From assembly GCA_000320545.1 (NCBI GenBank), contig ADNK01002758.1:62170-126169 (forward strand): 64,000 nucleotides of DNA, given 5' to 3'. Below, piece after piece: positions 1 to 63,970 of the stretch. The notes under the pieces were generated by a model. The model searched no databases and was not told the origin of the DNA. It saw nothing but the letters and a program-made list of their open reading frames with translations. Position numbers and translations under genes: made by a program. This DNA is from Bigelowiella natans CCMP2755. Taxonomy: Eukaryota > Protista > Cercozoa. Positions within the stretch are counted from its first letter, which is position 1, and each line of letters begins with the position of its first letter.

Positions 1-555
1 AAGCTGTGTTTTTCTGTCCACATCGCCGTTCATTCTCGTTTCTACTATTCCATTCCTCGTATCTACTCCTTCCCTCCTCGTGTGTTTTCTACCATCATCT
101 TTACTTTGTTTCTGTCTTCTTCTCCTAACTACTCTCTAACATACTCCAAAGCATCCTGCACAGTCTTCTGATCTTCTGAGCTTAACTCTTCAAAATGTTG
201 CAAATCGTCGATTGATTCAACCTGTGATAATGATAAATATTCTTGGTTGTGAATCAAGCACCTTTACAATTACCACGCACCTTTTTCGTTGTCTTTCGCT
301 GTCGGAGCTGCATCTGGAAAAATGGAGATACCTTATACCAAGTCGTCATCAAAGATCCGTCGTCTTTGAATGGGTTAGGACCTAGGCAAAACATAACCAT
401 CGCCCATTAAGAAGCAAACATAGTAGTAGTAGATGAGAAATATCATCACCGATAGAGCCAATCCTAAGCTCGCCCTTGGCAATTTTTTCCTTGGACTTCT
501 TACACTTGCTTCGGCCATTACTAGCTCTTTCGACAACAAAAGATCTATCTGCCAT
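1..555 (-). CDS. 5' end of a gene with an N-terminal PARP/DNA ligase III-type zinc finger (probable DNA ligase III-like; continues past the window start)
   Basis: Exons 555-450, 381-281, 221-~145 with GT-AG ends splice to MADRSFVVERASNGRSKCKKSKEKIAKGELRIGSIGPNPFKDDGSLMTTWYKVSPFFQMQLRQRKTTKKVESIDDLQHFEELSSEDQKTVQDAL. This follows the LIG3 finger pattern (CKKCKEKI.KG..RIG...PNPF......W......R.TTKK......EEL). The catalytic domains are outside the window. Confidence 0.75.
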
Positions 556-1199
556 TGACTTATTAGCGTTAAATTAAAATGGTTGTGGTCTTCTTCTTCT
601 TCTTGAGTCGTTGTAGTAGCACACGCTCGGTTGCTCCACGTCTCTTCGTCGTCGTCTTCTTGCTTCTTCTGGTTCGTTGGCGTTTTTTATCTTATTTAGA
701 ATATTTTATGTTGTCGTCAGTAAGAATTCCTTGTGATTTAATAAGAATTGGTAGTATATGCAAAAACATTCAAATCTGAACAGGCGACAATACTTGCGTA
801 GGAATTGTGGAGTGTAACGGCATGAGGTGTCCAGAAAAATGGAACCCACATGCACGTGACAATCTCTGTGTCTCCAGGTCACTATTGTGTCTGTCTGTCG
901 TTACCAAATAATTAAGGCTCAGAAGATCCTTCCTTAAAGTCCTTAGTTACTTATCTCAATTGCAAAATATCCGACTTTTATGGTTTTCTAAGCATAGTAG
1001 AGACCGAAAAACGCAGTAGCCTGTTTAAGTAGTATAGTATTTCTACCTTCACTTCATTCCCAATGGATAGAACAATAATCAACTTCCACTTTGATTGTTT
1101 CATGGAAAGGGATAAATTTCACCTGTGCGGCTGAACATTGAGATTGGAGCGAGTAGGAGCAGGAATCGAGAGAGAGAGAGTCAATATTCACATAGAGTC

Positions 1200-1597
1200 A
1201 TGAAGTCTACTGTGCGAAGAAACACGACGATTCCACCCGTCAACACCAGGTAGTTGAAGTATTTTCAATACAACATAAAAGTATTTAATATTTAATGTCA
1301 ATGATAAATTTCACCAGTCACTCGGATGGTGTTGATTAATGTTATTAGGATGAGCGTAATGTTTATAGTTACATGTGTGAATGATCTAAGAATCGAGTGT
1401 AAATAAATAGGCGACCAAAAACTTCTGAGGGATATACTATTCCGTCACGAAGAAGCACAAATCGTTTGACTTCTAGGAATAATTCCCCACCGCCTTTGAA
1501 GCTCCAATCAATTTCAAAGAGGAAGCTAAGTTTATCATCCAGAAGACCCGGAATTAAAAGGTATCCTACATCTTTTGAGCTTGGCACACACACACAC

Positions 1598-1634
<37 letters not shown>

Positions 1635-1798
1635 ATTTTCTCTATTAATGAGGTTCTTCTGAAATTTCTGAGAGAATCTTGGCTATTTGTTACCCTAGCG
1701 TTCTTCTAACACTCCACCGACTCTTTTCCTCCTCAAATTCTGTAATAACAGCCCCCCTTCATATAGAACCACTTCAAAACTAAGCAAAACCCCCAAAG

Positions 1799-1878: not shown

Positions 1879-2158
1879 CGACCGACTTTTAATCTATGTA
1901 ACACCTATTATACGAAAGATGCGCGTAGATAGGTTCTTCTTTACTTTGATTGACTAATATCTAGATATCCTCTCCATTGTAATACTATGGGTGATGATCA
2001 TTATCATCGTTATCATTTCTCAGCCTCATTCAAAAAGATTTCTACCACATCGAGATACAGCCCTTATTTTGACCATGATGTAAGTTATTATTGGGGGTTG
2101 GGGGAAGACTGACTGGGTTATAGAATTCATGTGTCAAGTTGCCAAGAATGTAGTTCAC

Positions 2159-2210
<52 letters not shown>

Positions 2211-2493
2211 AAAGAGAGAATCTTTATACAAGAAGCGAAACCTATTATTTTGTGTGAATAATCCAATGATTACTACTCATAAATACAATTCTTTAGGGCC
2301 AAGCATTCAACTTCGGTGCTTCATCATCACCGTCTTCGTCGTTATCATCATCATCATCCATTGCAACAGGGAGAAAAGGAGGAGGAGGGACTGGTAGGAG
2401 AACTAGCAGGACGATGGTCATGTCTTCTTCTGAGGATTGTAGCAGATCTCAGGTAGTAATTGATAGCAGCTAATAGTAGTAGTAGTAGTAGTT

Positions 2494-2535
<42 letters not shown>

Positions 2536-4718
2536 ATGGTTATTATGGACAATATAGCAGTAGCTACAAGCAGTAGGGACATATTCTGTAGCTAATGGAA
2601 AATGAGGCAGCAGCAGCAGCAGCAGCATCACCTTTAATAACAGACAATTATTTTTCGCATTATTACCATATCAGGAGAAGAAAACCAGGGGAACATTGAG
2701 CGGCGAAGGATCATCGTCATCGTGTTCATCTCCTTCTTCCTTAACAGGCGCAATAAGTAGTTTTTTCAAGGTTAAAGAAGTTCCTAGAACTGTTGAAGGC
2801 CTTCGTAAACGAGTAGTGTCATTTAAGGTCGTAAACTACTAGTACTCTTAGTACCAGTGCTAGTAGTAGTAGTAGAGTAGTAGTAGTAGTAAGTAGTCGT
2901 AGAAAGGACACACACGATATTTTCTGGTAGTATGTGATGTTCTCCTAATTTGTGTTCCTTTTCCTCTTTTTCGGATGCAATGAACTTTAAACTGATATCC
3001 ATGTAGAAAGCAGTCTTTTGTTAATTGTGATCTCGCTTTGCATATTCCACAGCAAGCTGACCTATTCTACTCTTACTTCTATTTTTAGAGAAAGAGGCGC
3101 GGGGAACTCGAGACAATAGAACTCATGCAAACGGAATTAGGGAAAATTTTTCACACAGCTAAGCGTGAATTTAAGATTAATTCAAAAATCGCAACAAAGT
3201 TTTCGAAGCTGGATAAGCAACAAGTGGAGCAAATCCTACGTATTCAGAAGTCCCGTGTGTCCGTTCTTATCCAACGACTTTCGCAGCTCAAAATCGACTT
3301 GGAAGCTGCACGAATTGAGAGAAATTCTGTGGAATACTCGCTGGAATATCGATGTTACCAAGAAACAACAGCAAGAATTCTTCATCTAGGAAGAAAAATG
3401 AAGGCTGTAGGAAATCTCATAGCAGCGGATAATAGCATGAATAACAACTGCAGTAACAATAATATCAGCAGCTTTGTAGCGAAAGATAGAGACTCAAGAA
3501 GAAGCAGTCCAACACGTAGCGGCAACATCGACAACAACAACAACAACAACGAGGAATATAGCGGTTGTTATGTTTGAGAATTGACATACTCGTAGTAGTC
3601 GACATAGACTTAGTGATGACACAACCCTTTTGTGATGTAAGAATCATGTTAGCACCATCGTTGTTGCGAATTCAATCGACACACACACAACAATGGTTGC
3701 TTGTTGTTTATCGTTGACCTTTGTCCTTCCTTCTTTTTCTTCCTCTTCTTCTTCGTGTTCTTCAGAGAGACCGACATCATCGTCTTCATCATCACACTAT
3801 GGTATCCCAGCTCTTCCAAAATTCCAAAATGGAAGTGCTGATGGTGGTAGTAGTCCTCCTAATTTTGATGGTGGTGGTGGTGCTGCTGCTGCTACGACTG
3901 CACAAGCTGCAAAATTCAAGGCACTCGTAAATTGTGTAGCCAAAGCAGAAGAGGAGCATGACTTGCTTCAAGCACAACTTGATGCAATCTCAGATTGGGT
4001 TTATCTCAACAAAAAATACCCTAATAACTCGTCGTCATCGTCTTCTGAAAGCAGCAGCAGCACCCGCAGCAGCACAACAGTCAAGACAAACAAGAGTGAT
4101 GAAGAATCAATAGGCGGGGGCACTACTACTGAGTCTCACAGCGATGATAACAACGGTGACAACAGCAACGAAATTAAGATGAAAAAGAAAAAGAAGATAC
4201 GTAGTAGTAGTAGAAGTAATAGTAGTGCGGCAGTCGATAAGGAAGAGGAAGGAGAGGAGAATGAGAATAACAACAACAACAACAACAACACAGGAACGGC
4301 GATAACAAGACCTCTTGTTGCAACGACGAGAGAACAACTGCATATCGAGCAAACATGCAAGGAGCTAACACGGGATTTAGATGACCTCAATTTACAGCTT
4401 GAGGTAGTAGTAGTAGTAGTAGTAGTAATAGTAGTAGTAAGTGATGTTGCTGCTGCTGCTGGTGAGGATGATGATGATGACGATGATGATGATGATGATG
4501 ACGTAGGCTAATAGTGGAAGATGATGTGTACAATACTAGATGTGTGTGTGTGTGTGTGTGCGTGTTGCATAGATGAGTGAGCGTATATGCATACGTAATG
4601 TCTCTAATACTGCCTGGATAAAAATAATAGTGTTCATACTAGTTTAAATGATGTAATGAAGCTCTTCATGATGTATGCATGCATCAGTCGTCCTCATCAT
4701 CATCATCATCAATGCCAC

Positions 4719-4749
<31 letters not shown>

Positions 4750-6272
4750 CTTCTTCTGCTTCTTCTTGTTGTTGTTCTTCACAGGCGTTGAAGAGGCTAC
4801 GTAGCCGAAACGACGAATACGTAAGGAAGAGAAACAACGCAATGACAGCACAAAACCGGAATATACAAGCGAAACATGAAGTAGAGCTCGAGGAGGTGCA
4901 GGCAAAAATAGGTCAAGGACGAAGAGTGTATATAATAGCAGTAGTAACAATAGCGAGGACTGTCATTAGTAACACAGAAAAATGTAAAAATACTACCTCC
5001 AATATTATTAAATAGTGACGTGCATTCACATTCATCATCATCTGCTTTTTCTTCATCTTTTTTGACCACCATCATTATAACTGTCTTTCATCATTTAGAT
5101 TTCGAGAAGGATTCCATGGCGGAATCTGCTAGGAGATTACAACATTCTAAATTACGTGTGCTACGATTAGAAGAGAGTGTAAAAAGTATCAAAGGGGGTG
5201 GGGTGGTGAAAACCGGAGATGGGGAGCTATTAATGATTACAACGAGTCAAGAAGACGAAATTGCTGAGATAAAACAAGATCCTTCTGCTGCTACAAGTAC
5301 AAAGAAAATTATCAAAAATGGTGATGATGATTATGATGATGATGATGATGAGGGAGAAGAAGAGAGGAGGAGGGGGGGTGATGATGCTACTGAGATCCAA
5401 ACGCTCACGGCCATCGTTGCGAAGTGTAAGGAAGACATTGAATATGAATCTACTCGACTCTGTGAAATAGGAGGACAAGAAACGTAAGAATGAATTCATA
5501 AAAGAAGAAAAACAGCCAGTGTGAAGATCTGAGAGATGAAAAAGTATCATCACGAAGAAGAATCGTTCTGCCAAACCTGAGGCACACCATCGTCATTCAT
5601 CATCATTATCATTATCATCATCATCATCACCATTCCAACTTAACGAAGTAGAATAAGGGTAATTCATCTTCTTACTCTTTGTATGGTGCTACTTCTTCTT
5701 TTAAGGTTCTCTTCTGCCTCTGACCTTGAAATTCTCTCCGTGGAGGAGCTCAAACAGCACGTTCTATCGCTTCTTAGTCAATACGGAGCAGACTACTATA
5801 ATTACAACAACAACCCCGAGGGCCAGGGAGAAGAGAACACAGTTAATAATAGTAGCTTTACGACGTCAGGAGGCTACTACTCTGAGATGCGAGCAGCCTT
5901 TGAAGCACGCAGAAACCAGCTCAAGAAAGAAGAACAAGAAGATGGCAACGACTACTCTGATGACTATGAAGAAGATGGTGATGATGATGATAATAATGGA
6001 ATTGAAGGAGGAGGAACAAAGGCAAGAGTCAATAGAAACAGCTGTAGTAAAGAGCCTACCTCATCATTAAATACAACGAGCACATCAACAACAGCTGCAG
6101 CATCTAATGACAGCACAGTAGTCGCTCCTTCTTCCCCTGTGATTTCCGCAAGGATGATCATGTGTATAGTCAAGATACAAATTCGTTTCAAGAAGAAGCT
6201 CCAGCAAGCAAGAGAAAGAATCAAAGCTATTGTGCTACGGGTAGTAGCATTACCACTTCTATTACTACCACG

Positions 6273-6304
<32 letters not shown>

Positions 6305-7084: not shown

Positions 7085-7399
7085 GCAGCTTCTTCTCAAT
7101 ACCATACAGCTTCAAGAGCTTATTCCCCTTCTTCTTATTATTCACAATGCGGAAGGAAGCAGCTAGAGGAGGAGGGGGCATTGACTTCCTTATGGACTTA
7201 CTTATCATTATTATTACTTTGATAATAATGCCAGAATAATCTAAAGTATGTGCATTATTACTTTGATAACAATGCTGGAATGCTCCATTGTTTACGTCAC
7301 GGATGATGTATGGGCGCTTTTCCTGTGTAGGTATTAAAATCAACCCCAACCTGCGGTTGACGAATTTGAAATGAAGCTCGAGAATACAGCGTATATTTC

Positions 7400-10287: not shown

Positions 10288-10319
<32 letters not shown>

Positions 10320-27279: not shown

Positions 27280-30260
27280 ATCTAGAACTGAAGAATTGCA
27301 TTAAGTGATTCATGAATACCAGCCTGATGCTTCATCGATGGCTTGCACATTGAGGCATGAGCAATTCTTTTCATCACATTGTGTTTCACCCGAGCGCATC
27401 GATCGTGGCTAGGTGGGAACAGTCCAATATCCATTTGCTGAACACCCAGATGCCCACCCTTCAACAAATCGGCTCGGCTCCTAGCTAGCTAGCCAAATTT
27501 GTCATTGCACGCTACTAGCAGCTCAGAGTTTTCAACAACCAACACCAGCAGGCTAGCTAACTAGCACTAGAGCAGGGCGTTGACAAGTCCTCGCAATGGC
27601 TTTTGTTGCGCAGGCGCTGTTGCATGCATTCAGTTGTTTCCCACGCCGTGGCTTTTGCGATGCGCGTGCGTGCCATGTGTGGCATTTTGGCATCGATGCA
27701 AAGTTCGGTGTTCAATCTAGCAATGTGCGTTCAATGTTCAGTGTTCAAACGATGCCTGCGATGCTCATTTCTCATCCTTGTTTGCTGCACGCTGCCCCAG
27801 TTGTGCAATGATGGACAAAGTGACACTGTTGTGCACATCACACGCACACACCTGGATTCGCACGTTGAATTGAGCGTGTCGCATCATTGCAACCAACGCA
27901 CCCTAGCGCCAGCACCAGAGCACGCTGGCATCGCAAGCACTCACAGTTTTCCCCAGCTCCAGCTAGCCAGAGCTAGCTTGCTAGAGAGCTCTGCATGGGA
28001 TGAAAAGGAGCTGCAGGAGGAGCGAGAGTTGTCTTGCGTGGACGGACGGGACAAACGAGCAGTTCCGGAGCACTGGAAAACCGAGAGTTGCTGTGGATGG
28101 ACAGGACAAATGAGTCAGTGAAGTGATTTGAATTCACAGCGGTTGAAGGGACCATGTTCCTAGCTGAACATGGGTCCGTGCGACGTTGAAGATCGATTTT
28201 GAACACACGGCGTCAAAAGATTGATTGACTGAATGAAGTGGGTGTTTTCTTCTTCATTGGTTGGCGTCTGTCTCTTGGTTGGACAAATGTGGCAAATAGA
28301 TGCGGTTTCCACCTTGAGACAACAAACGCTCCTGTGTGATGCTGCCCATGCCCGCTCATCATTTTGGCGTCTAGCGTCACGATGGTGGTGGTAGTGCACA
28401 ATGTTTTTTCCCCATTTGTTAGGAGGTTTCGACGAACGTTGTGAAACCTAGGCCACATCAAGCAGTGCGACAAAGAATATCCCAAATTTGCGATCGGAAT
28501 TGCACGTCCCATTTGTTTGCCACAACGTTTTCCGGACCAAAACTCAACAAGCTACATGCATCATGATGGCCACCGGCATGCAGATATCCACTGCAGATGG
28601 TAACGTTTTAATTCATTTTCACCGCTTTGGGCATGCTAACGTCTTTGTTTGTTACAAGGAGTCGCTCACGGTTTCATTAAAGATGAAAGTGACCCAAGCA
28701 TTTGGATGAAGGCTGTGAAACAATCAGGATTGCCCGATGGATTTGCTCGTGGTAGCAAATTGAGCACAAAACATTAAGCTCGACACCTCAATTTTGATTG
28801 CAGACTCAGCAATGATTCCATGTAATTTGCTAGCGTTGACTTACATGCTTTTGTCAACATCAGACATCTGTTGCATCATTGCTACCTGCGGTTTGTACGC
28901 GTGCTGTTGGAACCCCATCGCTGCTTTTGACAACAATGATCCCAACAAGATGACGAACATTACGTTCAATGACACTACGAAGGAAGTTGGAGTTCGAGTA
29001 CGATCAAATTACACTTGAAATGTGGCTATGACTCCATCTCATGATGTAAACATTTCAGGAACCAAATGCAGACATCAAGACATACAGTTATGCATCCATT
29101 GTACCAAAAGTAGAGATGAAACACACTGGTCTGACTGTCAACAATCAGCCTCAGTATGCTTTCTTCATCAGCCAACAGTCAGGTTCGCATCGAGTCTCTG
29201 CATTCCGCATCGAAACCTTATCTTAGCCTTTTTTGCAGGAGAATCAATTCAGATTGGGACTGAATTTTCAATGGTCCCAGGTTTGACGTTGCAATCCTAT
29301 CTGAGCTTCGTAGGCGCTAGATTGGGTGGAGCGCAAGGTGCAAATGCTCCCAACAACGACTCCACTCCTGCAGCGACCAACATGGAGAAATCCGTTCAAA
29401 TGATGTAGAAAGCTAGCTAGAGTCGGTCGATCAGTTTGAACCTCCACAATTGACCTCGTGACAATGATGGCTGCGTCTTAGTTTCATCAAAAAATCATCA
29501 TCAACAACAACGACCAAGTTTTGTGAATGCTTTGGCACGTCACATTTAGATGTGTCTTGCGACCGAACACACGTCTGGACGCACATCTAGACATGGTGGT
29601 TCGCAGAAATTATGCATTTAGTTGTGTGTGCTCCAGAACAAGCATTTCTTTTATGGTGTGAACAACACTCCAGAAAACTAGACAAATGGATCAATCTAGA
29701 AATTGCACATCTTGATATGCTAATGCGGTCCAAATCGAGATCGAAGTAGATGTGTGAAGATGAAATGCAAACACTGTGAACTCTAGAACAAGTGAAGGTC
29801 CAAATTGTGTAGATCGCTAGATCTGTCTAGCTATCTAGCTTTGCTATTCGTACTAGTGTGGTCTAGAAGGTGCTCTAGTGCTGCTCGAAACGGACATCTC
29901 TGATCTAGCTAGCTAGATATGCTAGCATGCTAGCATGTGCAAATGCTGTGAACGCAAATTAACACGGCTAGACGGGCTTTCCATCTTTGTGGCTCATGAC
30001 ACCATCTAGCCATGCTAGCATAATTGTAATGACTAGATCTAGAGATGAGCGCTAGAGCGTGAAAGGCTACCTAGCTACGTGATTAGTAGTTTAGCAGAAA
30101 CAAAGAAGATGCAATCTAGCAATCTACCGACTAGTTGACATGCAAATGCGAAATGTGCAACGATGTAATTCTTTCGCAACGTCTTCTAAGGTATCTAGCA
30201 TGAACATGATGATTGATGTGCAACATCCACAACACAAAATGGTTCATGATGAAGCATGAT
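27280..30260. other. CTAG/CATG/TGCA-rich tail-to-tail spacer 3 (contains the pseudogene relic)
   Basis: CTAG-dense flanks at 27480-27990 and 29410-30200. Confidence 0.8.
27990..29408 (+). pseudogene. Decayed, apparently intron-containing coding relic of unknown family
   Basis: Protein-like frames broken by stops: TAG 28449-28451 in CCTAGG context, and TGA 29016-29018 between same-frame ORFs 28794-29018 and 29022-29408. A GT-AG intron-like segment at 28600-28658 joins ...MQISTADG|VAHGFIKDESDPSIWMKAV in frame. Confidence 0.45.
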
Positions 30261-30306
30261 CACAAGCTTCGAATTTGTTGTCTCGAAAAATGTCGTATCT
30301 CAGTTG

Positions 30307-33300
30307 TCATGACAACCAAGCCTCTACTTTTGCATCTTCGTCCGCTGATGAACAATATCATGGTTGGGAAACGATTATCCAAACCTGAACGAAGAGGTCT
30401 TTAAACGTTGGATTTTTCACCTTGCTCTTTTAGTTTCCGAAGTAACAAGGAGTTTGGGGTCCGAATTCCAACATTCTTCCCTGTGTAAGGTCCAACGTCT
30501 AGAAGGAGAGAATCTCGGCCATTCACAACAACTGAATCTGCTCGACTTTCCACAATTGAATTTCCTGCCTGTGTTTTTTTAATTTGAGACCATCTTCAGA
30601 TTGGTCTGTACCAAGTAGAAGTAGAATCTCAAAAACACCGTTACCGATTCATGTGTGATAAATGATTGCTCAGTGTCATCCTGCATCTAGCAAGTCATTG
30701 ATATTTTATATTTCAAAGATCAGATTCATATTTCATAACAAGTATTACAGACATAAATATACCACTTGCAAAGTCAAAAGAGAGCCCCTTTTCGAAACAG
30801 ATGAGACAGAGGAGGTCCTTCTGCTGATTCCTTTTGGGGTTTCAATGGACTTGCCTGAGATACGGTGTCGTAGATACTTTATGCGCGTTTCCTGCAGCTG
30901 TTTTCTTTTCCATCGTTCCCTTTTTATTTTACTCATAAGCTGAGTGACATGTGAAAAACATCAGTGCAATTAATTCAAGAAATCTTGTTTGTTGAATTAA
31001 ATACCTCCTGGGCCATCAAAAGGTAATCGCGGGTACCCTTTGAAAAATAATCATCTAAGTCTTTGCCTTTCTCTAATGCTTTATCCGGTTTAACCATCTC
31101 TCTAACATTGCTTCCGCTTCGATATCCCTGTTTCCTTTCTATACTTCGGAACACCCTTTTTTCCTGAATGTAGAGGCATTTTCTAATCAACGGTTGCAAA
31201 GATGAGCCGATATTTCTTTTTGAGATCAGGGATTGAAGAATAAAAGGATGCTTTAGCATGTCTTCAGCGGAAGGCCTGATACGGGCATAGACTTATTAAA
31301 AACGCCGTACAAGCGAATAATAGCTCATCTACCTTTTCTTAGGGTCCTTTATCAGACACACTGCTAGCCATTGTTTGAATAAAGATGTCCAAAATGGCAT
31401 TTTGAGAAAGTGGAGAGGAGCTGGGTTTACAGCAATAGATCTCAATACACGAAGTCGAGTTAATTGAGCATATGGTGGTTCGCCTTCTGCAATTTCAATC
31501 GCTGTGATACCAAGAGACCTGAAATATATACAATACGTATCTACATTATATCTACACATACATACACATATGAAGGAAATTTATTTTAATATCTACATGA
31601 TATATCTAATATGCATTATTTACCAAATGTCTGCTTTTGCATCAATTGTTATAGCCGGTTTATGTGCCCCACCTGAAACAGCTTCCGGGGGCAGCCTAGT
31701 ATATAACTACCATTTAACAAAATTAAATTGAAATTTATACTATTACGCACCAGAGTGGAGATCCTAATATTTGATTACATCGAAGTGTATCCTTAATATG
31801 GTGGCTAACTCCAAAGTCGGCAAGTTTTACACCTCCACAATGTGTCAAAAGAATATTGTTGGCTTTAATATCTCGATGTATTATCCCCTGTAGATTACAG
31901 AAACCCATCAATAGATATGATGGCACCACTAACATTTATGCACCTTCTTATGAAGATAGGATAATGCTGAGAGAACAGAGGATAGGATATAGGAGATCTG
32001 AATATCGGTCAGCTGAGCTCTTGTTGTTTCCAAAAGTTGCATCACCGAACCAGCATCACATAAGTCCATCATAATCCATAGCCTCCCCTGAAAAATTTTC
32101 GTGGTTTCAACTTACCAAGCTTATTAACTTCTCATCCTTTAAATTATTTAATGAATTGCCTTGTTATCTGGTCCATGCGAACCGTAATATGAAACAATTT
32201 TCGGATGTTTTATTTGCTTGAGTATTTGGATCTCTTCCATTAGGTCTCCTAGGTTTTCCTGCATTTGGGTGGAAGTTGTGATAACGCTCTTCGCGACACG
32301 GGACATGTTTACATTACCTTTTGATCTGAGTTTAGATTTGTTGACGACTTGCAAACTATCTCGGTAACATTTTCATTGTCTTCGACGTTCTTTAAGATAT
32401 CTGTTTCTAATCCCTCATTCAAATTTGCCTTTGAAATGTTTTCAGTGGTCTGGAGGTTTAGGATCTTTATAGCCAATTCGAACTTGGCCTTCTTCGAGAA
32501 AATATTTTTGTTATGAGTGATCTGCAAAAAAATCAAAGAGTTCCCTTCAAACCTTGTGTACTGCCCTCCATACAGTGGCGAAGGAACCTTCTCCCAGCTT
32601 TGACTTCATTTCGAAAGCCTAGCACACAGATATCGGTCAGTATATTTCGATTTCACGATGCCAATACCCAGCATATCATCATAAAAGAATAATCAATGCT
32701 AAATAGTTTAGATGACATAATAACCTCCTCTAGAGACTGCCCGGTCCATCTTAAATCCCTTCCAACATGTGTCAGATGGGTCACATTGTAGGGAGCTGAA
32801 ACCTAAGAAACATATATCAACCATTTTTAGTGCCCCTTCGCTCAATAACATAAATGATTTCGCAATATAAAAGAATTTACTTCAGGATCCCGCACGCTAT
32901 TTCGAGAGAACAATGTCTGGGTGCTATGATTTAGTGATTTGACTCTAACACCTTTATTATTGACACAAGATTCATAATTATAACAATATACTATATCTTG
33001 CAATAACTTCAACCTTTTGAACCATTTGTGGTTATAGAATTGGCTGGTGTCACTGCTGGTTTCTTCCAATTAAGAGGATTATACCCCGAATCTGGTCATT
33101 ATTAACCATTCTGGTAAATAAAACGACATTACTCTAAGGGGAACCTATCGACCAGAACTACGACGCCTTCCTGAATGCCACCGCGACATAACTCGGGGTA
33201 TACTTTGAATGGATTTATGAGCATAAAGACCTAATAGTGTATAATGTATTTCACTTATGAATTCAAAAGCATATGCAGAATACCTTTTAAAGCATCCATC

Positions 33301-36300
33301 GTTGCATTTCTCATTCTCACCCGAGCAGAATGATTAAAGCGCCGTATTCGTTGTTGCTGTGTTGAGGATGCACCTAGGGAATTTTTAATCATACTAATAC
33401 CTGGTTTATGTATGCACCCTACCAGTTAGGTCTTGTATTGTGGACGTAATTACTGATACCTATGACGGTTACTAAATTCAATAGTGCCCTTTTAATTACA
33501 AGAGAATGTTTAAAATGTAAGTCAAGTTGCTAATATATCAGACCCAATTTTGATGCTCGGGGACATTCTTACATTGGAAGTGTAAAGGCCTATTCCTTTC
33601 CGCACAGTGAATGAGTATGCTAAAAAGAGGCGTTCCTGAAGTATATACATCATTAATTATGATTTTCTGGATATTGTTTTTTTCCTACCCATTGGAAAAC
33701 CAGCAGTTTCTTTCTGTGTGCCACGATCAGCGTTTCGTGTTAATTTGGCAGTGGAATACTTGGAATCTGTGTCCTTTGAACTAACTTCTGTGGTAAGTTT
33801 TAAAATACATTATGTCGCGCTGAGTACAGATGTACTGTTTTACCTTCAAGGATCTCGTCAAAGTCAGTTGAGCTTGTATCATCATTATAGTCATCCTCAG
33901 TCTTCTGAACGGCTGTATATGCAGTATGTAGACCAATTTCACCACAAATCTCATTCTTTATCGTACACCAAAGAAGTAAATCTGAGAATAGATAAACTCG
34001 TCGCCTCTTTTTCTTTCTTCCAGTAAGTAATACACCAGACTTTATTAGTGTCCGCCCAGGAATCTTGTATTCATTTTGTGGCAAAAGTTGTCTCGGAATC
34101 TTTTTTCTATCGGCGTATCTTTCAACATAAGATTGTCCCCATCGAAATTTTCTTATGATTCTTTGGAGGCGACTCGTAGAGTTTGATTCGCAATACATAA
34201 GGTATGTGGACAGCAGTCGTATGTAGAATAAAATCTTGGTTAAAGGTACAGACATGAGTTGCTGAAAGCCTCCTTTGCTTCGTAAATCTGATGGAAACTT
34301 CATCCATTCCACATGGAAGGAAGGTAACTTCTGCATACCATTCGGTATAATACTAAGTGTTTTAATCAGAAGATCCGATAAAATCTTGAAACTCTTGCCG
34401 AACAAAACATATTCTTTTATTAACCCACGAGATGCATTGCTGAATGCCTTTATCAGGCTTGTGGAAGCGATTTCTTTCATAAGAAGTTTATGAATGGATT
34501 CTATCCGAATGAGCTGATCCTCAAATTGTGTAATATATAGAGTCTCTTCAAACGATATTCCAAGTTCATCATCTCTCTTTTTTCCTGAGTCAACTATTGT
34601 TGCGCTAATAGACCTTTCTCTAAATCTGAAATAGTTGTTAATGGAATGGACAACCCTGCGCAGAGTAGATAAGTCCTCGATGTATTTTCTATCGACTGAT
34701 AAGAGACGTGATCTTTGCAAAAATAACTCTTCTTTTTGTTGGTCCAGAGATGTCTCCGAATCCTTAAGTGAATCTTTTGTGCCGTTTCTACTTGACAGAA
34801 TTTCGTGTCCTGATGGCTTTAAATTGTAGGGTGTCGATTGAGGTCTGTCCAATTTGTATTGTCCTTGGAATTTTGAAGGTCCTGTGACTGGCGTCTTTGG
34901 TGAAACGATTTTGTAGACGTCTTTAGAAGCTGGATTTCCGCCCATGCTCTCCTCCGATATTCTCATTTGGTTGGAATCAAATATCTTGTGACTTGGTTCA
35001 GAATCCTCGATGTAAAAGGACGCCATGCTACCTTCACTCATGTAACTATGAACAGCGCGAACATCATCTTTACTTTCTCTACGTATTAAATTCTTTGTTT
35101 TCCTTATTGACGCCCTTGGAAATGGTGAGGGGATGTCAGGGCATTCCAAGTTACTTTTAGCCAAACCTTTTTGATTCAGTAATTTTACACCGGTATCAAT
35201 TACTGATTCTGGAGGGGTTTTCCGTTCTAATTCTGAAATATCTTTGATTTCTTTTCGAAGACCAGATCTTGCATCTGCAACACAAATATCGCTCTGTATT
35301 TTTAAATGAACAATCAAATTCAACATATGAACATATTTTCAGCTATCTTCCATGATTACTGACCGAGATCATCCGAAAAATGCCTTGATCGGACGCGAGA
35401 ATGCACAGGCGTCGTTGTAGGGGGGGGAGGCTCCACAGTCAATAATGGAACATCACCATCTCTGTTAACATCCCCAATATCTTAATAAATAATAAATTAA
35501 TCGCCAATACATAAAAGATAACATATTCTGAACCTAATTAGAACACAATCGCCAGTTGTGCTTTCATGACCCTAAATGTGATTCAAAACAATCAAATCCT
35601 ATTGCTTTTCAACTTTCGACACATTTCTCTCATCTGATACTCTCTCGAGAAACGCAAATCAATTCTTACTAAGGGACTAAAATTTTGTCCCTTTGAATTC
35701 ATACTTTCAAATCCTTTCTTCACCTTTGTATCGGCATCAATTGAAGGAATCTTGTTTTTTTTAGTTTTGTTCTTTCCAGAGTTTCCATCATTTTTGCACA
35801 ATCTGGATTTCTCGTTTGGAACATAACTGAGCTTCCATGTAATGGCTGCAGACTGTAAATTTACTGGGGTTTTTGGTTTCCGTACAGGGGGCTTCTTAAG
35901 GATTTTTTTCTTCATTTTTGGGACAGATTTGCTTCGGAACTTCATTTTTGCAGATTGCATCTTGTTGGAAACACCCATTGAAGCTATCGTCAGCCTTGTG
36001 TGATTGGTAACTCGTTCCTGGTTCGCACTTCTACAACGAGATCTCCTCTTTCCCTTCATTACCCTTTTCGGGGACCGTTTGCCTTGAACTCTGGAATCTC
36101 TTGATTTTGACCTATTTCTTCGCGGGCTTTGCGTGGCTCTTTTTATACCCGTATAATATGTAGCTCCTGTAGAAAATGTTCTTGTTTTGGACAACTCTTT
36201 CCTTCCATGCATCTTCCGAACTCTGCCAGTAACTTTCCAACTATTTTTCGGTGAAAGTGACCGAGCCTTTCGAATTGATAATGGTCTTTTGAATGAAATG

Positions 36301-36449
36301 TGAGGGTTTCCTGTTTTTGATGACTCTTTCCTTCCATGCATCTTTCGAACTCTACCTGGAACATTCTCATCCTTTTTAGGGGAATGTGACCGAGCCCTTC
36401 GAATTAATAATGGTCTTTTTAATGAGAGATTAAGAGATGGGTTCTTCAT
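30307..36449 (-). CDS. STE20 (MST/GCK-like) Ser/Thr kinase with a basic N-terminus and DH(RhoGEF)-PH module
   Basis: Kinase motifs [96 protein letters not shown]. The 508-aa ORF 33800-35326 has DH-like helices followed by PH start [27 protein letters not shown]. Both gene ends are approximate. Confidence 0.85.
36180..36420 (-). repeat. Two copies of a 129-bp (43-aa) coding tandem repeat
   Basis: [43 protein letters not shown] followed by [36 protein letters not shown]. Confidence 0.85.
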
Positions 36450-38005
36450 GTTTTTGAGACTTTGATTCTGATTATCAAATTTTCATATTGTAGAAATATC
36501 AGGGTGCTTGAAACTTTGATTACAGTCATTACTTTTTTGTTGTTGGAATTCTTCGAGGTATAATTTCTTTTCGTTTTACGGATGATTGCTGAAATACGAA
36601 TGGCCAACTGAGTTTTAAATTTTTAATTTCAAGGATATTACAACGTGATTGCATGCGTTAGATTAATTTTTCACGTAGTAGAGCAGGTAGATTAATCTTC
36701 AATTTTGTTTCAGGGGTATCTTCGGCTTTAGCATCTTGATATGATTCAAAAACTTGTTAAGGTATCAGCTGTAGAATATGTAGCTTATTGTCATAAATCT
36801 ACATTGTTTCTTGTTGGTTTTTATGCTTTCGTTCGACACAGTTGCCTAAGATATAGTTGTTAAACCTGTAAATCAATGCCCAAGAATACTATACCTTTCT
36901 TCGAATTGATAATTCTTTGGGTCCTTTCTTTGCCTCCACGTAGTATACAAGCCGTCCTGCTGCGCTCGCCGATCGTTTTATGATTCGGCTTGGTCGTATC
37001 AGTCTCTGAAATGTAACAAAAATCACTTGAAACAAGAACGATAACAGATAACATGCAAGAATGTAGTTCTAACATCCACTGCATGTGCCTTAGAACATGT
37101 TTCTTTGTCTTTCCAAAAAGAAAGACGCTTTTGGAATCCTTTAGTTGCCTATAGATAGGAATAGAGTGATGCACAAGAACGTCAGATCAGTCATTCAAAT
37201 CCGCACGTACCTTTGTTGATGCTGGAGGAACAGATCGTTTTTTTTTTTCTTTTTCATAGGCACTGTTTTCACGTTTAGTTTACTGAAGACTTTCGTTGAG
37301 GCAGGGGGAACGGACTGGGCTTTTCCATTCTTTCTCATTTATCGTATTCGATAAATTTACGAGAGCTAACAAGTCGATACCATTGATCTACATTGACACA
37401 GAAAAGATGTGCGTGATCACACACCTACGACAACAACATTTGTCAGTCGTCACAAATGTCGATACCAGGCTTGAGACCGGTTGCTTCGAACCTTCATTTA
37501 GTGACAACCTACATGTTTTGTCGCAGGACTAAGAATCCCTGCCATGACGATTCTCAAGTGGTCTCAAGCTATGTTTGGCTGCTGTAACGCAGCGCCATGG
37601 AAATGTAGGCAAATTTGTCAAATGTGATTTTTTCCGTCCTTGGACGTTATCTCGTACTTTTGGTGCAAATAGGGAGTAATGTACGTCGCACCATGATTTT
37701 TAGTGTGATTTTGTACTTGAAAGCTTGTCCATTATTATTTAGTCAACGTTAACATCATCATCCTACATGTCAAATGTGGAATATGTGTTTTAGAGCAATT
37801 TGTATATTTAAGTATATTATTTCATTGTCGGAGGTAAGGGTATCAGTCCATGTTGATTGCAAAATTATTTCAGATAACAAATTCTATGCTGGGTTTTGAA
37901 AATGGTCGGCCGTTAAAAGTTTCTACATTGATGACCAACATCGATTATGTTATCACGAGCTGCTTTGGTTTTTGCAAACACAATCGATAAATCCCTCCAG
38001 CCAAC

Positions 38006-54605: not shown

Positions 54606-54652
<47 letters not shown>

Positions 54653-55817: not shown

Positions 55818-55878
<61 letters not shown>

Positions 55879-56889: not shown

Positions 56890-57039
56890 TCACTATCATT
56901 GATTTATTTGTATGCGATCTGCGGCTGCCATGCATGGGTTATATGTGCCGGAAAAAGTACGGTTACAATTGGAGAAATTGCTGGATTTTATTCTTTTGCG
57001 GTTGCTTCATAGATGTATCGAGCAAAAGTATACGATTTT

Positions 57040-57650: not shown

Positions 57651-57715
57651 TCTGCCATAAGAGTCACATAGTAAAAATCAAAACTAAAAACTGATAACTT
57701 TAACATTAGTGATGC

Positions 57716-58729: not shown

Positions 58730-58782
<53 letters not shown>

Positions 58783-59697
58783 ACAGATTACGCCTATACT
58801 TCAGAAAAACATAAAAGTGATCTGATCGACAATGGGGCTAACCCACTTCTACTAGCACAAAACTGCTGTTAGACTACCTTGCGAAGCTTCTCAAAATGTG
58901 CGGCTTGCATCTGTTCTTTATTGTTCCGCTGCTCCAACGCCTGTTTACGCTTCTCCTGCTCTTCTATCGACCGGGATTGTATCACCTAATGATGATAGTA
59001 ATGGTAATCACGATAATAACGGTGAGAAAAGGGGCGGAGAAGAGTGTATGATATTATTGAATTCTACTACTACAGATTCTTCGGATGGTAGATAGCACCA
59101 TCATCGTTTTTGTGGTTTAAGTATTGGTGATCGATCATTCTCTCAAAAGAGTGACTTGACTTGACTACCCGTTCCACCATGTTGTTGAGGGTCACACTTG
59201 GAATTATGGGCAAACTCACCTAAATTGATGGCACGAGGTATAAAGAAGGATTCAGAAAAGGAACCCCCTTTCCACTTAGGGGAGGAGGAGAGGAGGGAGG
59301 AATAGAAGAGGGAGTGACGTTATAGGAGGTAACATGCACTTCAAACTCTATCGATTTGGAGCGGAAAGAAGGTCAGGTTCCCTCTACTCATTATGTTTGT
59401 TGCTTGAGGTCGAATTAGAACGTAAGACACCTTCTTCCGGCAATGAGGGCACTCATCTCTACGGTTTAAATATTCCGTTATGCAGTCTTCGCAAAATGAA
59501 TGCGAGCATGGCAGTGTGCAAGCCTTCATGAACATGCTGCAGCAAATGCTGATCAAGTAATGGAAGAAACAGTAGCAAATGGCGAGTTAGAAAAAAATGT
59601 TGCACCGTCTTTTTTCAACAATTCTTGTTCATAAAAATAGCAATATCTATGTATTACGAATACACTTAGATTATGTGTATATATGCGACCAGTTGAT

Positions 59698-59773
<76 letters not shown>

Positions 59774-61726
59774 TATATAAATATGTTATAACAATGTTGG
59801 TAAGTGAATATGGGGAAGGCAGAACCAGCATTCCAATTCCTCTTCCATGCTCTCGTCTAAGTGCTGCCTGATGGGGTATGTCGTAAATATGACGATGATA
59901 ATGAAGTATGATAGTGGTACGATAAATAATATAGTCACGACCTCATTTTTTCTAACTCTTGCTTCGCTTTTGTGCCGTCCTTTACCTGCAAAGTTCCGAT
60001 AGATTCTGGTTTAGATGAACTGCACTACAGGACGGCACATACGGAGCAAATCCATTGAACTTGTATTCAGCGCAGGCAAGAACTAAAAACATGTGTAACC
60101 TTTGAATTTAATGCCTCTATTTCTTTTTTCAGCTTCAAGGCCTCTTCCTCTCGGATCCTACTCACATGATACCGAATACAATTATGAAACACGCCTTTCA
60201 TTTCTTTGATAAGTCTTTATTTCTGATGCCTACATCTGTTTGTATTCCACTCACTATTCATCGCAGACCGTAAAATAGCGTCCTGTTGTTGACGCTCTTG
60301 CTCTCTCTTTTTGTTTAGTTCTTCGAGAGATTTCTGGAGCTTCTCCGATAGTTCCTTCTCCTTTTCCTCAGTAGCCTTGCGTTGCTTCTCTTCAACTATC
60401 CTTTTCTCTTTTGCTATTTGCTCCTCTTTAGCCTTCGCTTCTTCACGTATTCGAGTTATTTCTTCTTGTGCCTTTTGGTATCTTCTTTGTTCAGCCAACC
60501 GCTCCTGACAACGTTCGGTCTCCAGTTTCTTTAATCGCTTCTTATATTCCTTTTCATACACAAAGATGATGGTATCTTCGAGTGCTCGATAGGTTGGGTA
60601 CAGTGGATGAAATACCGTGTCCTCATGTTGGAATTTCCTTTTTAAACCAGCGATTTGCTGTTCTTTCTCCTGCAACAGGGCAAATTCTCAGACAAATACT
60701 GTAGCACTGGGGTTTATCTCCTACTTCCTGCATAAGTCCTAGCAAAACTAAAACCCCATGAAATGCCGCACCTACCATTTCTTTCTCCTTTCGTATTCTC
60801 TCGACTTCCTCCTGTACAAGCTTCTCTTTTTCAGCACGAATACGTTCAATCTCATCTTTTGAAGCCAGACTTTCAACCTACTCTCCCGATGCACGGCAGG
60901 GGTTGCAGATGAAGAAAACAAGTAAATCCTTGCTTGTCTAATCCATGCTTGTATAATGAGAAGTAACAATCCCAACCCCGACCCATTACAACTGTAGCTT
61001 TTTAACCGACCTCGTATTTATAAACGAATTCGGAGGAACTCATATTCACCCCAAAAATAATGATATCCCCGGAACTGTATTAGTGAGAAGGGGGGTTATT
61101 AAGTAAAGGAGGGAGAGAAAAGGAAATAATGAAATGTAAGAATGACAATGTAAATATATGAAGTTTCATCAAAGTACACGTACAAGACTAGCACGAGCCA
61201 ACCTCAATGTCTGCGGTTCTTGTTTCGGGATCCTTTCAGAGTTTAGATAAACCCTGTAAATTGGGTGGTTACGTGAGTCGTATATATATATAATTTTCCT
61301 GACACCTGGTAAACGTAATGGCGGTGATGACGTGGAAAACCGTGAAGAGTAACTACCCATTGGTGCTATTGTTGTCGATGATGAACCATTTTCCTTCGTC
61401 GTACTTGAAACGAGCATGGTTCCGAGAAATCATATTTTTTGTGACTCGTGAATCAAGCACGTAATCGTTTGTTCTGGGATCCCTTCCCACCTTCACAACG
61501 TCACATTTGCGTGGATCTGGACGGAAGATTAAATGAGAAATGGATAGGCTTCAAAACGGCAAGTCTAGATTAAGAAAATAGTCGATCAACGCCTCAACTT
61601 AAACCGGCCTTTCCGGCAGTATGTGTTAAACGCAGACTACTATTTGCTACTACCGAGGATCATCTGCCGTGCAATCCCCCATGAGTTCCTCGAAGTCTGC
61701 TTTAGCAGAGTTCCGATGTTGATCAT
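57716..61726 (-). CDS. RNF8/CHFR-like FHA + coiled-coil + C3HC4 RING E3 ubiquitin ligase
   Basis: FHA motifs VKVGRD...MISRNHARF...IIDNNSTNG|VYLNSERI...GDIIIFG. Coiled coil at 60217-60900. RING EEELECCICCSMFMKACTLPCSHSFCEDCITEYLNRRDECPHCRKKV. Ends approximate. Confidence 0.85.
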
Positions 61727-62137
61727 GTTATTTCAAAGGATAGAATAGAGCAGGGGTTCGATGAGGGCATCGATAGAGCCCGAGGGAGGCGCGTGCTGGG
61801 AGGTGCGATGAAGTATGTTTGGGAAGACGAAGTTCTTCCCGCGTTAAATTCCATTCCTTTTACAAAGGAAATCCTCTACTTCGGTGCGAAAACGACAACA
61901 ACAACGACAACAACAACAAAGAGTTCTGCTAAAATTAAATCGGTCCTACTACTTGCGAGGAAGGAACTAAAGGATGGGAAGCTGCCATCATTTATGACCA
62001 TTGTTCATCGGTATAATCACCTACCAAAATAATACTTAGCTGCACAACAACAACAACAACAGCAACAATAAACAATGGCAGCAACAACAATCGCAACAAC
62101 AACAATAGCAACAACAACCTTCTGCAACCAGTTCCGG

Positions 62138-63970
62138 ATGCCCCCCCCTGAAAGTCGCAGCCGCAGCCGTAGCCGTAGTCAGAGCCGTCGCCGCCGTCGC
62201 CACCGCCGCCGAAGCGATCGTGACCAACAGCGTCGCCGGTATGAAAGCGACTCGAGCAACAGTCCGAGACGGAGCAGCCAAAGGAGAAGGGGAGAGAGGA
62301 GGTAGTCTCTGTGCATTACCGACCGAATGGGAAATAATTCTCTCTTAAACAGGAAGAGAAGCCGCGAGGATCCAAGGTTCTCCTCTAGTAGAAGGAGAAG
62401 GAGAAGAAATCACGAGGCGAGACCCGCAGACAAATCCAGAAGAAATACAACATCGCGGGGAGGGTTTATTGCTTTCAGAGAGGCGGCCACTCAGGCAGAA
62501 CCAAGCGAAGATGCACAGACGCATTCTATGCAGGGAAGAACACCATCGTCCTCCTGTGAAAAGAGTAAGTTTTTGAGCGAATACGAGAAGAATGAGCTTC
62601 AGCGACGAAGCGACTTGAGGAAACGGTACATCATTACCTGACCATACCATCACGATTAGGAACATTATTGGACCTGATAACCCCCTTCCTATTCCGTCAT
62701 CCTCCTTTTCCCACTCAATCAGGATACGAGATAAATTATCCAAGAAGTCGACGACAACTTCTCCGCCGTCAACAGTGGATTCTACTTTGCAAAGAATGCT
62801 GAAAAGCTCTCATGACGAGATCAAACACGTGTGTCTCAATTCGAATGTCCCTCTCACAAAGCTCCGAGAATTATATTAACTCTGTATTGTCAATACAGGT
62901 AGCCTCAAAGGACGCTAGTTTGACAAAGGTTGTTTTTAAATCGCTGCAAGATGATGAGGAGGACATGAAGAACAGAAACTATTGCGTTTCTTTGACAGAA
63001 CTGCGCCAAAAATTTGATAGGTAAGTAAAAATTAGAAGGATTGTTTTCAATGAGATATGACAGAGGCGCGATCTTTTTGCTTAGGGATGAGAGGTACAAG
63101 TCGATGATAAAAGAAGTGGAAAGTGAAGGAATTGAATCTTTAGCGGACAAGTTCCAGCCTTCTAGTACGAAATCGCAACATCAGGTTAAGACTCTGAATT
63201 ACAGCTTTGCTGTCGAATCTTAAACTTGTGATGACCTTTAATTTCTGGTGACAATATACATCTAAGAATAAATATGCATATTTTTTACATTAGGACACTT
63301 TGGTGGATGATGCCCATTGTGATGCCATCTTTGGGAACCCATTCCTCACTGAGGAAAAACTGCGAGGAGGGACTGGAAGTGAAGATCTCACCGGTCGCCA
63401 AGGAAAGCGAACGGAGGCAAAACCAAAGCCACAGCATACTAGTGGTAAAACAGGGAAACTGCATCTTCGACAGCATGGTCGGTTTAGACGCGCGGGTCTT
63501 GGATCGATATCGGACCAACAGGTCTGAAAAAGTTTTATGGGATCGCAAGCGATCGTAATCATCGTCATGTGTGTTTCTCTCATTTCATTATTTCATTATT
63601 GTGGTATCTGGTTTTGCATGGTCAACAATGTTGTTGTATACTATAGATTTCGCGATTGCAGACTGAGGAAGAACGATGGGCAGAGGAAAGGGAGCGTAGC
63701 TGGAAGGCGTCAAAAAACAACGACGATGACTCTGACTCAGATAGCAGCTGGGGAACCAACGGCAGTTGTGATTCACAGAAATACGTAGATATTGAAAGGA
63801 GAAAGTACACACAAGATCTTCGTGCTGAACCAGCAAATAATCTTAGCAGCACCGCCTCAAAAAGCACATCAGCGGAAAATGCTAAACCAGCAAAGCTATC
63901 ATGGAAAGAACGTATTTTAGCTAAGAAAAGAAAGTCTGCATCAATGCCAACGACATCTACAAAAACGTAA
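62138..63970 (+). CDS. Arg/Ser-rich nuclear protein (possibly RSRC1/SRrp53-like)
   Basis: MPPPESRSRSRSRSQSRRRRR N-terminus. Spliced exons continue through IESLADKFQPSS, HCDAIFG and LSWKERILAKKRK to TAA 63968-63970. The family assignment is weak. Confidence 0.6.

Follow-up and report, generated by a model that had tools for sequence, protein, structure and literature searches.

Alternating gene strands and two classes of intergenic spacer in a 64-kb window of the Bigelowiella natans genome

The orientation of neighboring genes is close to random in most eukaryotes. Bidirectional gene pairs are defined by opposite strands, facing 5' ends, start sites within about 1 kb of each other, and a common regulatory region or co-expression; where they have been described, they constitute a minority of genes, about 10% in humans, and operon-like divergent pairs, such as those of histones, bring together partners that act in one pathway or complex. 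In yeast-type compact genomes, the orientation of neighbors affects expression noise and 3'-end overlap, and divergent, tandem, and convergent arrangements occur in near-random proportions, with roughly half of all junctions being tandem (PMC5654408, PMC6993858). Orientation is highly ordered in the alternating unidirectional blocks of dinoflagellates (PMC8110479) and in the polycistronic units of kinetoplastids, where tens to hundreds of genes share a strand and switches coincide with special DNA.

The window, by which we mean the whole 64-kb stretch of B. natans DNA that was analyzed, resembles each of these systems in part. Intergenic regions are short, as in yeast-type genomes (PMC5654408, PMC6993858), but no tandem junction was recognized. 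Orientation is ordered and switches coincide with a special class of DNA, as in dinoflagellates and kinetoplastids, but here the block is a single gene, the opposite extreme. In contrast to the minority status of bidirectional pairs elsewhere, all recognized genes in 64 kb belong to head-to-head pairs that tile the DNA and may share promoters, and their partners, unlike those of operon-like pairs, are functionally unrelated. Among the papers searched, there was no account of such a layout for Bigelowiella, nor of nearly genome-wide tiling by divergent pairs in any eukaryote.

Gene order and the basis of strand assignment

An earlier note had proposed that 14 genes in the window alternate in strand without exception. 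Independent rederivation of the gene order recovered the same 14 genes (g1 to g14) on the same strands, minus then plus throughout, with a strand switch at 13 of 13 junctions (p = 0.5^13 = 1.2e-4 under random orientation); the alternation stands within the reach of sequence-only methods, but the words "without exception" cannot be proven. Seven head-to-head pairs tile the window and account for every recognized gene; as judged from transcript, Pfam, splice motif, and open reading frame (ORF) evidence, the members of each pair are adjacent, lie on opposite strands, and face each other with their 5' ends. No same-strand neighbors of the kind that make up unidirectional or polycistronic clusters were found among the recognized genes of the window. 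Same-strand neighbors would, without transcripts, appear as one long gene, and the switch count is consequently biased upwards. The gene density of 14 genes in 64 kb (4.57 kb per gene) is similar to the genome mean of 4.36 kb per gene for 21,708 genes (PMC12730881), which probably leaves little room for hidden genes. No gene was recognizable at 8.5 to 11.4 kb, 14.8 to 17.7 kb, or 28 to 29.4 kb by these methods, which cannot establish silence. As far as sequence-only methods reach, the alternation is partly confirmed as a real, nonrandom layout.

For nine genes, the assigned strand is supported by a transcript, a domain, or a splice motif. RNA support was available for g7 only of the 14, in the form of a 5.5-kb transcript, L015; the strands of seven further genes are based on Pfam matches (five clear, two weak but supported), and that of g6 is based on one splice junction that yields a complete, canonical EF-hand. 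The five genes g1, g8, g9, g11, and g14 were assigned from ORFs and composition, with a weak zf-PARP match in addition for g1. Pfam searches of long ORFs were mostly blank, and the useful matches came from small protein-like ORFs picked by eye. A 4-mer strand classifier was correct for 45 of 48 test windows in leave-one-gene-out trials and gave stable results when the transcript gene was held out. Neither the Hint gene nor the membrane-protein gene g10 is classified correctly, and the unprocessed segmentation amounts to noise. First-pass gene-finder models were used as supporting evidence only. A self-trained version drifted onto low-complexity DNA, lost a verified gene, and flipped strands, and a run with repeats masked was too insensitive. 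No further transcripts for the lysine-rich exon or the largest g2 exon were found by word-index protein search, and exact look-up of ten ORFs and metagenome scans likewise gave no match; such blanks do not indicate absent expression. Neither Rfam nor tRNA scans detected any RNA gene in the window.

The leftmost gene, g1 (positions 1 to 1641, minus strand), is the 5' part of a gene that continues left of the window; it comprises protein-like ORFs at 132-263 and 1372-1641, a zf-PARP match with an E value of 0.006, a negative k-mer strand track, and a first-pass model with 12 exons on the minus strand that stops at the window edge. Its partner, g2 (2129 to 7056, plus), is a large gene for a charged, low-complexity protein, with six consecutive ORFs of 135 to 291 aa spaced 60 to 170 nt apart, the top codon score of the window, and a positive strand track between 2.5 and 7 kb. 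A MINDY-3/4-type deubiquitinase gene, g3 (11514 to 17728, minus; candidate ATG at 17728), carries two colinear PF13898 matches, at 14571-14741 (profile positions 18-51; E = 2.7e-4) and 11871-11996 (profile 249-273; E = 0.014), in small exons within microsatellite-rich introns, and the actual 3' end of the gene may be closer to 8.6 kb. It is paired with a phosphatidylinositol-phosphate kinase gene, g4 (18423 to 21547, plus), in which a PIP5K match (PF01504, 19888-20121; E = 1.9e-7) exceeds the curated cut-off, the last exon is the ORF at 21137-21547, and the strand track is positive. The third pair joins g5 (22656 to 24850, minus), modeled as six exons encoding a secreted DOMON-Hint (Hog-type) protein of 552 aa (Hint PF01079, E = 2.7e-20; DOMON, E = 9.6e-5), to the EF-hand gene g6. 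Two exons of g6 were verified (25757 to 26049, plus) within a gene of roughly 25.2 to 27.9 kb: exons 25757-25804 and 25975-26049 flank a phase 0 GT..AG intron (25805-25974), and their join, DKDKDGKLSVEE-F, reads by eye as a canonical 12-residue EF-hand loop, the first exon alone giving an EF-hand_5 match (E = 1.4e-4).

The RhoGEF and protein-kinase gene g7 (30158 to 37359, minus) has about 27 exons. The 5512-nt transcript contig L015, which is 99% identical and probably derives from a sister strain, maps from 37359 to 30158 with GT-AG introns of 49 to 152 nt, and kinase domains were found on its product; a RhoGEF match had been obtained from the window itself. The small gene g8 (38006 to 39227, plus) consists of an ATG ORF of 145 aa and an ORF of 163 aa, with a four-exon model and a positive strand track. 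The strongest strand signal of the window belongs to g9 (39976 to 43194, minus), which encodes a lysine-rich repeat protein in a 538-codon open frame containing eight 42-nt (14-aa) repeats. Its partner, g10 (43825 to 49560, plus), is assigned to an MFS-type transporter from a weak MFS_1 match (47675-47938; E = 7e-4) and transmembrane-like fragments; its tiny exons lie within microsatellite-rich introns, and it has two weak paralogues elsewhere in the genome. The probable membrane-protein gene g11 (51235 to 53309, minus) is represented by protein-like ORFs, including an ATG ORF at 53052-53309, together with minus-strand gene-finder models and a negative strand track. It faces g12 (54192 to 56889, plus), a beta-lactamase-family serine hydrolase gene with colinear PF00144 matches at 54696-54995 (E = 8.4e-4) and 55577-55840 (E = 2.8e-10), which may start at 53292 or 54363. 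In the last pair, g13 (58295 to 61917, minus) has an RNF8-like layout of FHA (61356-61550; E = 7.5e-12), coiled-coil ORF (60217-60675), and RING (59344-59586; E = 1.8e-8), and g14 (62327 to 63970, plus) runs to the window end from an ATG ORF at 62327, with a six-exon model and a strongly positive strand track.

The partners within a pair have no evident business with one another: deubiquitinase with phosphatidylinositol-phosphate kinase, DOMON-Hint protein with EF-hand protein, RhoGEF-kinase with g8, lysine-rich protein with MFS transporter, membrane protein with beta-lactamase-like protein, and FHA-RING protein with g14. Because the paired genes are functionally unrelated, we regard the pairing as architectural rather than operon-like.

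Divergent gaps and convergent spacers

All seven head-to-head gaps measure approximately 0.37 to 0.7 kb, with that of g11/g12 possibly about 1 kb; most are ATG-to-ATG distances from models, and several ATG positions, hence several gap sizes, are model based. The earlier description of six of these gaps as similar in size agrees with our estimates, but its value of about 1.5 kb for the seventh was too large. That gap, between g7 and g8, is about 650 to 670 bp, given the L015 5' end at 37359, the first g7 ATG at 37338, and the g8 ATG at 38006, and it joins the size class of the others because L015 reveals RhoGEF-kinase 5' exons up to 37359. Two gaps are constrained at both ends: that of g7/g8 (37360 to 38005), with 646 nt between transcript end and ATG and a copy of the heptamer TGTCGCA at 37519, and that of g9/g10 (43195 to 43824), with 630 nt between model ATGs, in agreement with the earlier figure. 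The start sites of g7 and g8 are therefore less than 650 nt apart, against a criterion of about 1 kb for bidirectional pairs; the other six gaps are model-based ATG-to-ATG estimates. The g3/g4 gap (17729 to 18422) extends from the candidate g3 ATG to the first plus-strand ORF, with model-based limits, and is without an island of the kind described below.

In the 157 kb of DNA compared in total, there are 18 copies of TGTCGCA, 10 of which fall inside putative divergent gaps, which account for about 8% of the sequence. The heptamer is not enriched across the window overall (9 copies versus 6.8 expected) and is enriched only within the divergent gaps. This enrichment is the one hint that the putative gaps may act as shared bidirectional promoters.

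The spacers at converging 3' ends are of a different class, as had been suggested previously. They are longer, from 0.75 to about 4 kb, and are saturated with the motifs CTAG and GCATG. Islands rich in these motifs, located blind to the gene models, occur at each of the six internal junctions where genes converge and are absent from all seven divergent gaps (Fisher p of about 6e-4), and they split the window into exactly seven minus-then-plus units. The island between g2 and g3 (7232 to 8531) has 24 copies of the motifs, compared with about 2.6 per 400 nt contig-wide, and ORFs between 8.3 and 11.5 kb gave no Pfam match. The densest CTAG island fills the second spacer (21548 to 22655), with 43 CTAG in 1.1 kb. 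The third spacer (27082 to 30157) contains two islands (27082-28931 and from 29432) separated by a 0.5-kb core; its DNA is single copy apart from simple repeats, and no Pfam match or transcript was found within it. The fourth (39228 to 39975) is covered by an island at 39132-40231, the fifth, between g10 and g11, contains an island at 50132-51081, and the sixth (56890 to 57881) lies in an island at 56182-57881. Throughout the 157 kb, Pfam- or transcript-verified genes that adjoin an island all point into it: g2, g4, g12, an ankyrin gene, Rsa3, and a second Hint gene on the plus strand to the left, and g5, g7, g13, cobW, and RPB2, as well as GDPD beside a weak island, on the minus strand to the right.

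A proposed self-maintaining layout and its possible extent

We suggest, with a probability of roughly two in three, that the genes are arranged as head-to-head pairs with short 5' regions that meet tail-to-tail across island-filled spacers and that this layout maintains itself. Each pair would share a 5' region of about 0.4 to 0.7 kb, serving as shared or back-to-back promoters, and neighboring pairs would meet tail-to-tail across convergent spacers that are longer (0.75 to about 4 kb) and packed with insertion debris rich in CTAG/GCATG, both converging genes terminating into what would be silent DNA. This scar-like debris may mark the spacers as sites of DNA breakage and rejoining. A divergent pair remains a divergent pair when reverse-complemented, and inversions, insertions, or translocations with breakpoints in convergent spacers would therefore keep the alternation. 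A break inside a compact 5' gap, on the other hand, would part a gene from its promoter, and a tandem junction would allow read-through into the next promoter.

Extension of this layout to nearly the whole B. natans nuclear genome, with divergent pairs tiling some 21,700 genes, a switch rate above approximately 85%, and breakage confined to convergent spacers, is a tentative proposition to which we give somewhat less than even odds. If true, the divergent pair would be the unit of genome evolution, at the opposite extreme to the gene arrays of kinetoplastids and dinoflagellates, and the pairing of almost every gene would constitute a natural experiment on promoter bidirectionality, transcriptional interference, termination, and insertion-safe DNA. 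The rearrangement model is testable in that breakpoints should occur only in convergent spacers. The layout would be useful for annotating an intron-rich genome, since orientation and island positions would predict gene starts and stops, and for expression tools, in which short two-way promoters could find new use. Data from RNA-seq, ATAC-seq, KAS-seq, and Hi-C are publicly available for B. natans (PMC8887012; RNA-seq runs in bioRxiv 10.1101/2025.03.17.643675).

Evidence from beyond the window bears on how far the layout reaches. The left half of the contig is compatible with it but includes same-strand stretches measuring about 14.7 kb and 8 kb. Its approximately 7 to 9 recognizable strand blocks in 62 kb approach the random expectation at average gene density, which would suit a reading in which alternation is real here but the genome as a whole is only moderately enriched in divergent and convergent neighbors, the window being a lucky or most noticeable stretch. 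At 32 kb to the left of the window, an island that contains a dispersed repeat has the 5' end of a minus-strand gene on its left, and this junction may be a tandem exception. Island density across the 157 kb, about 1 per 10.5 kb, is only weakly above random expectation and points to a switch rate closer to 0.8 than to 1.0, with a wide error. We nevertheless consider a merely moderate excess unlikely: the long blocks of the left half may each be one long gene, like g3 (6 to 9 kb) and g7 (7.2 kb), and a 31-kb stretch of an unrelated contig, selected on other grounds, alternates in the order cobW(-), Rsa3(+), RPB2(-), an unassigned gene (+), TM(-), and Hint(+), and all of its convergent junctions carry an island.

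The self-maintaining layout is also preferred over a gene-model artifact, in which errors among the 14 genes, or genes missed in the long spacers, would make the strict pattern partly illusory. The gene finder and k-mer classifier did misassign the strand of the MFS region and strayed into low-complexity DNA, the Pfam blanks at 8.3 to 11.5 kb and 28 to 29.4 kb do not prove emptiness, and the TGTCGCA copies at 27877 and 28466 could belong to an undetected promoter that lies between the islands of the third spacer. An artifact is improbable, however, given nine genes whose strand is backed by a transcript, a domain, or a splice motif, blind-found islands that give exactly seven minus-then-plus units, and a gene count equal to the genome-average density, and a hidden minus/plus pair between the islands at 27 to 30 kb would leave the alternation intact. 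Pure chance under random orientation is far less probable still; a 1-in-8000 run could occur somewhere if very many windows were surveyed, but the layout recurs on the second contig and is perfectly associated with the islands, an independent sequence class.

Strand order of the fourteen genes

The 14 genes recognised in the window, g1 to g14 from left to right, lie in the strand order - + - + - + - + - + - + - +, with a switch at 13 of 13 junctions (p = 1.2e-4). The earlier note had claimed alternation without exception, in modular divergent pairs; we re-derived the same strand order, corrected the size of one gap and, within the limits of evidence drawn from sequence only, consider the observation of alternation to be essentially right. 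Strict divergent pairing is accompanied in the window by two spacer classes, short 5' gaps and long 3' spacers. To call genes, we read both strands for short protein-like open frames and tested these against Pfam; our own gene finder and k-mer strand classifier were of partial use, being misled by low-complexity DNA, which by our own mask makes up a third of contig C979, and by membrane-protein genes. These methods do not distinguish a tandem gene pair from one long gene; switches are easily seen and non-switches easily missed. The density of 14 genes in 64 kb, or 4.57 kb per gene, matches the genome average, and therefore few missing genes are possible: the relevant passages of PMC12730881 give 21,708 genes with a mean length of 2,834 bp, 7.8 introns per gene and 32.9 Mb of intergenic DNA for B. 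natans, from which we computed one gene per 4.36 kb. The window, the right-hand 64 kb of the 126,169-bp contig C979, is intron-rich with a G+C content of about 40%; its short GT-AG introns and the size of the assembly (91.4 Mb in 3,736 contigs) agree with those published figures. Scans of the 64 kb for tRNA and Rfam genes found none.

The gene that matters most is g6, because without it g5 and g7 would be tandem. The plus-strand gene g6 was called from splice signals and an EF-hand match: exon 25757-25804, which by itself matches EF-hand models, is followed by the donor GTAACC, the intron ends with CTGTAG at 25974, and the phase-0 join to exon 25975-26049 reads FQQADKDKDGKLSVE followed by EFRLH, by eye a canonical EF-hand loop of 12 residues that has Glu at position 12 and is followed by Phe. 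To its left, g5 (minus, 22656-24850) carries DOMON and Hint domains by Pfam. To its right, g7 (minus, 30158-37359), a RhoGEF-kinase gene, has transcript support: its largest exon matched a protein of 1,156 aa with 99% identity, the source of which was the 5,512-nt transcript contig L015, and the alignment of L015 to the minus strand, 37359..30158, comprises about 27 exons separated by GT-AG introns of 49 to 152 nt. Further transcript searches were blank, and RNA support is limited to g7. L015 (relative to window 35364-36734) has its coding sequence in three separate frames, 144, 297 and 1156 aa long, whereas our own g7 model, with slightly different splice sites, is a single frame of about 1,700 aa; the broken frames suggest that L015 is an alternatively spliced or intron-retaining isoform. 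One g7 intron, at 32087-32158, has an apparent GC-AG splice pair in place of GT-AG.

Left of this trio, g1 (minus, up to 1641) was called from protein-like frames and a weak PARP-type zinc-finger match, and g2 (plus, about 2.1-7.06 kb) from six successive long frames spaced just 60 to 170 nt apart. Pfam identified g3 (minus) as a MINDY-3/4 deubiquitinase, exon 14571-14741, with the catalytic Cys, covering profile positions 18-51 and exon 11871-11996 positions 249-273, colinear on the minus strand; g4 (plus) is a PIP kinase gene with a match in exon 19888-20121 (E 1.9e-7) that exceeds the curated cut-off and a terminal exon ending at 21547. On the right, g8 (plus, 38006-39227) was called from one open frame of 145 aa and another of 163 aa, and g9 (minus, 39976-43194), which encodes a lysine-rich repeat protein, from a 538-codon frame whose N-terminal part (42571-42906) holds eight tandem 42-nt (14-aa) repeats of the form MSEENENKDSAAA. 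The MFS-type gene g10 (about 43.8-49.6 kb) is a run of transmembrane-like fragments on the plus strand, one of which matches MFS_1 (E 7e-4) and recurs in other parts of the genome as two weak paralogues; placement on the minus strand was rejected on this evidence, and the classifier failed here because the codons are hydrophobic and T-rich. The exons of the MINDY and MFS genes (8300-21000 and 44500-49600) are tiny and sit amid introns full of di- and trinucleotide microsatellites. Minus-strand frames define g11 (about 51.2-53.3 kb), one of them giving an N-terminus that starts with ATG and contains a transmembrane segment; g12 (plus, up to 56889) is a beta-lactamase-family hydrolase gene with two colinear Pfam matches; g13 (minus) was called from Pfam and open frames, with FHA (61356-61550, E 7.5e-12), coiled-coil (60217-60675) and RING (59344-59586, E 1.8e-8) regions; and an open frame and gene model place g14 on the plus strand from 62327.

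Divergent gaps and convergent islands

Stretches dense in CTAG and GCATG were mapped without any gene model, and these islands (7232-8531, 21332-22681, 27082-30481 in two parts, 39132-40231, 50132-51081 and 56182-57881) coincide with all six internal tail-to-tail junctions and with none of the seven head-to-head gaps (Fisher p about 6e-4). CTAG is enriched sixfold in the islands, where GCTAGC, GCATGC and TGCA are enriched too; its contig-wide count equals the mononucleotide expectation because it is depleted outside them. L015 terminates within an island, and across the 157 kb read every island-bordering gene verified by Pfam or transcript points into the island. The convergent spacers measure 0.75 kb (g8/g9), 1.1 kb (g4/g5) and about 2 to 3 kb (g6/g7), the g2/g3 spacer would reach up to about 4 kb if g3 truly ends near 11.4 kb, and the others are about 1.2 to 1.6 kb.

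Among the divergent gaps, the 630 nt between model ATGs at g9/g10 reproduces the figure reported previously. The g7/g8 gap had been put at 1.5 kb with uncertain 5' exons (36450-38005), a size that does not hold: L015 adds four exons at the 5' end, so that g7 reaches 37359 and its first ATG is at 37338, and the gap is 646 nt from transcript end to the g8 ATG (38006), or 668 nt from ATG to ATG. The remaining gap sizes hinge on imprecisely placed start codons, that of g11/g12 being 0.4 kb or about 1 kb. Relative to the window, G+C is above the mean in three of five measured divergent gaps and CpG is higher in four of the five. The heptamer TGTCGCA/TGCGACA has 10 of its 18 copies in putative divergent gaps (window 25263, 37519 and 53815; C979 52372; L011:5663 and 5830; L012:2424, 9307, 9419 and 9624), which make up about 8% of the 157 kb; copies elsewhere are mostly in CTAG islands, and no longer consensus was found around the 18 copies.

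The earlier interpretation, of bidirectional-promoter gene pairs separated by a distinct spacer class, is partly supported: divergent pairs and a distinct class of convergent spacer were both recovered. We suggest that the 5' gaps may serve as promoters, either shared or back-to-back, and that the layout may preserve itself. Alternation would survive rearrangements or insertions with breakpoints in convergent spacers because a divergent pair is, in layout, its own reverse complement; breaks in the compact 5' gaps, like new tandem junctions, would harm promoters or leave them open to read-through. The arrangement is not operon-like, since pair partners are functionally unrelated. Bidirectional gene pairs are well known but elsewhere form a minority class; in compact genomes of the yeast type about 50% of junctions are tandem, and the long unidirectional arrays of dinoflagellates and kinetoplastids mark the opposite extreme. 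A full-text search on Bigelowiella and chlorarachniophytes, whose reach stopped short of the original genome paper, returned no description of gene-orientation bias in B. natans; it covered the pertinent passages of the paper on the Amorphochlora genome and of papers on B. natans chromatin.

Alternation beyond the window

A 31-kb stretch of another contig, chosen solely for its Hint paralogue, carries in order GDPD (-), inverted-repeat DNA, cobW (-), Rsa3 (+), RPB2 (-), a probable plus-strand gene, a membrane-protein gene (-) and Hint (+). Wherever strands could be assigned, its islands at 7.0, 13.05, 21.45 and 26.4 kb have a plus-strand gene on the left and a minus-strand gene on the right. 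GDPD and cobW may be tandem, or a small plus-strand gene may be concealed at their junction; two TGTCGCA copies in opposite orientations lie just upstream of GDPD. Between these two genes, the DNA at L011:5890-7000 (C2409 65890-67000) adjoins an island, is G+C-rich and open for 115 to 233 codons on both strands, and contains the peptide GGFTPPGFGPCHAR, which recurs in inverted copies.

The left half of C979 also fits the scheme, with islands at -48, -31, -15 and -4 kb (counted leftward from the window start) enclosing minus-then-plus units; two long runs on one strand, 14.7 and 8 kb in length, may each be a single gene or several. At -32 kb the 5' end of a minus-strand gene faces an island containing a dispersed repeat, a possible exception to alternation. 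Over the 157 kb, the island density of about 1 per 10.5 kb corresponds to a switch rate near 0.8, with wide sampling error and on the presumption that each convergent junction holds one island and that islands occur nowhere else. A Pfam search of the dispersed repeat (L007:345-1637, window -31824..-30532, inside the CTAG island) gave no match; both of its strands are open (201, 233 and 251 codons), and copies 86 to 91% identical occur on contigs C485, C1096 and C1064.
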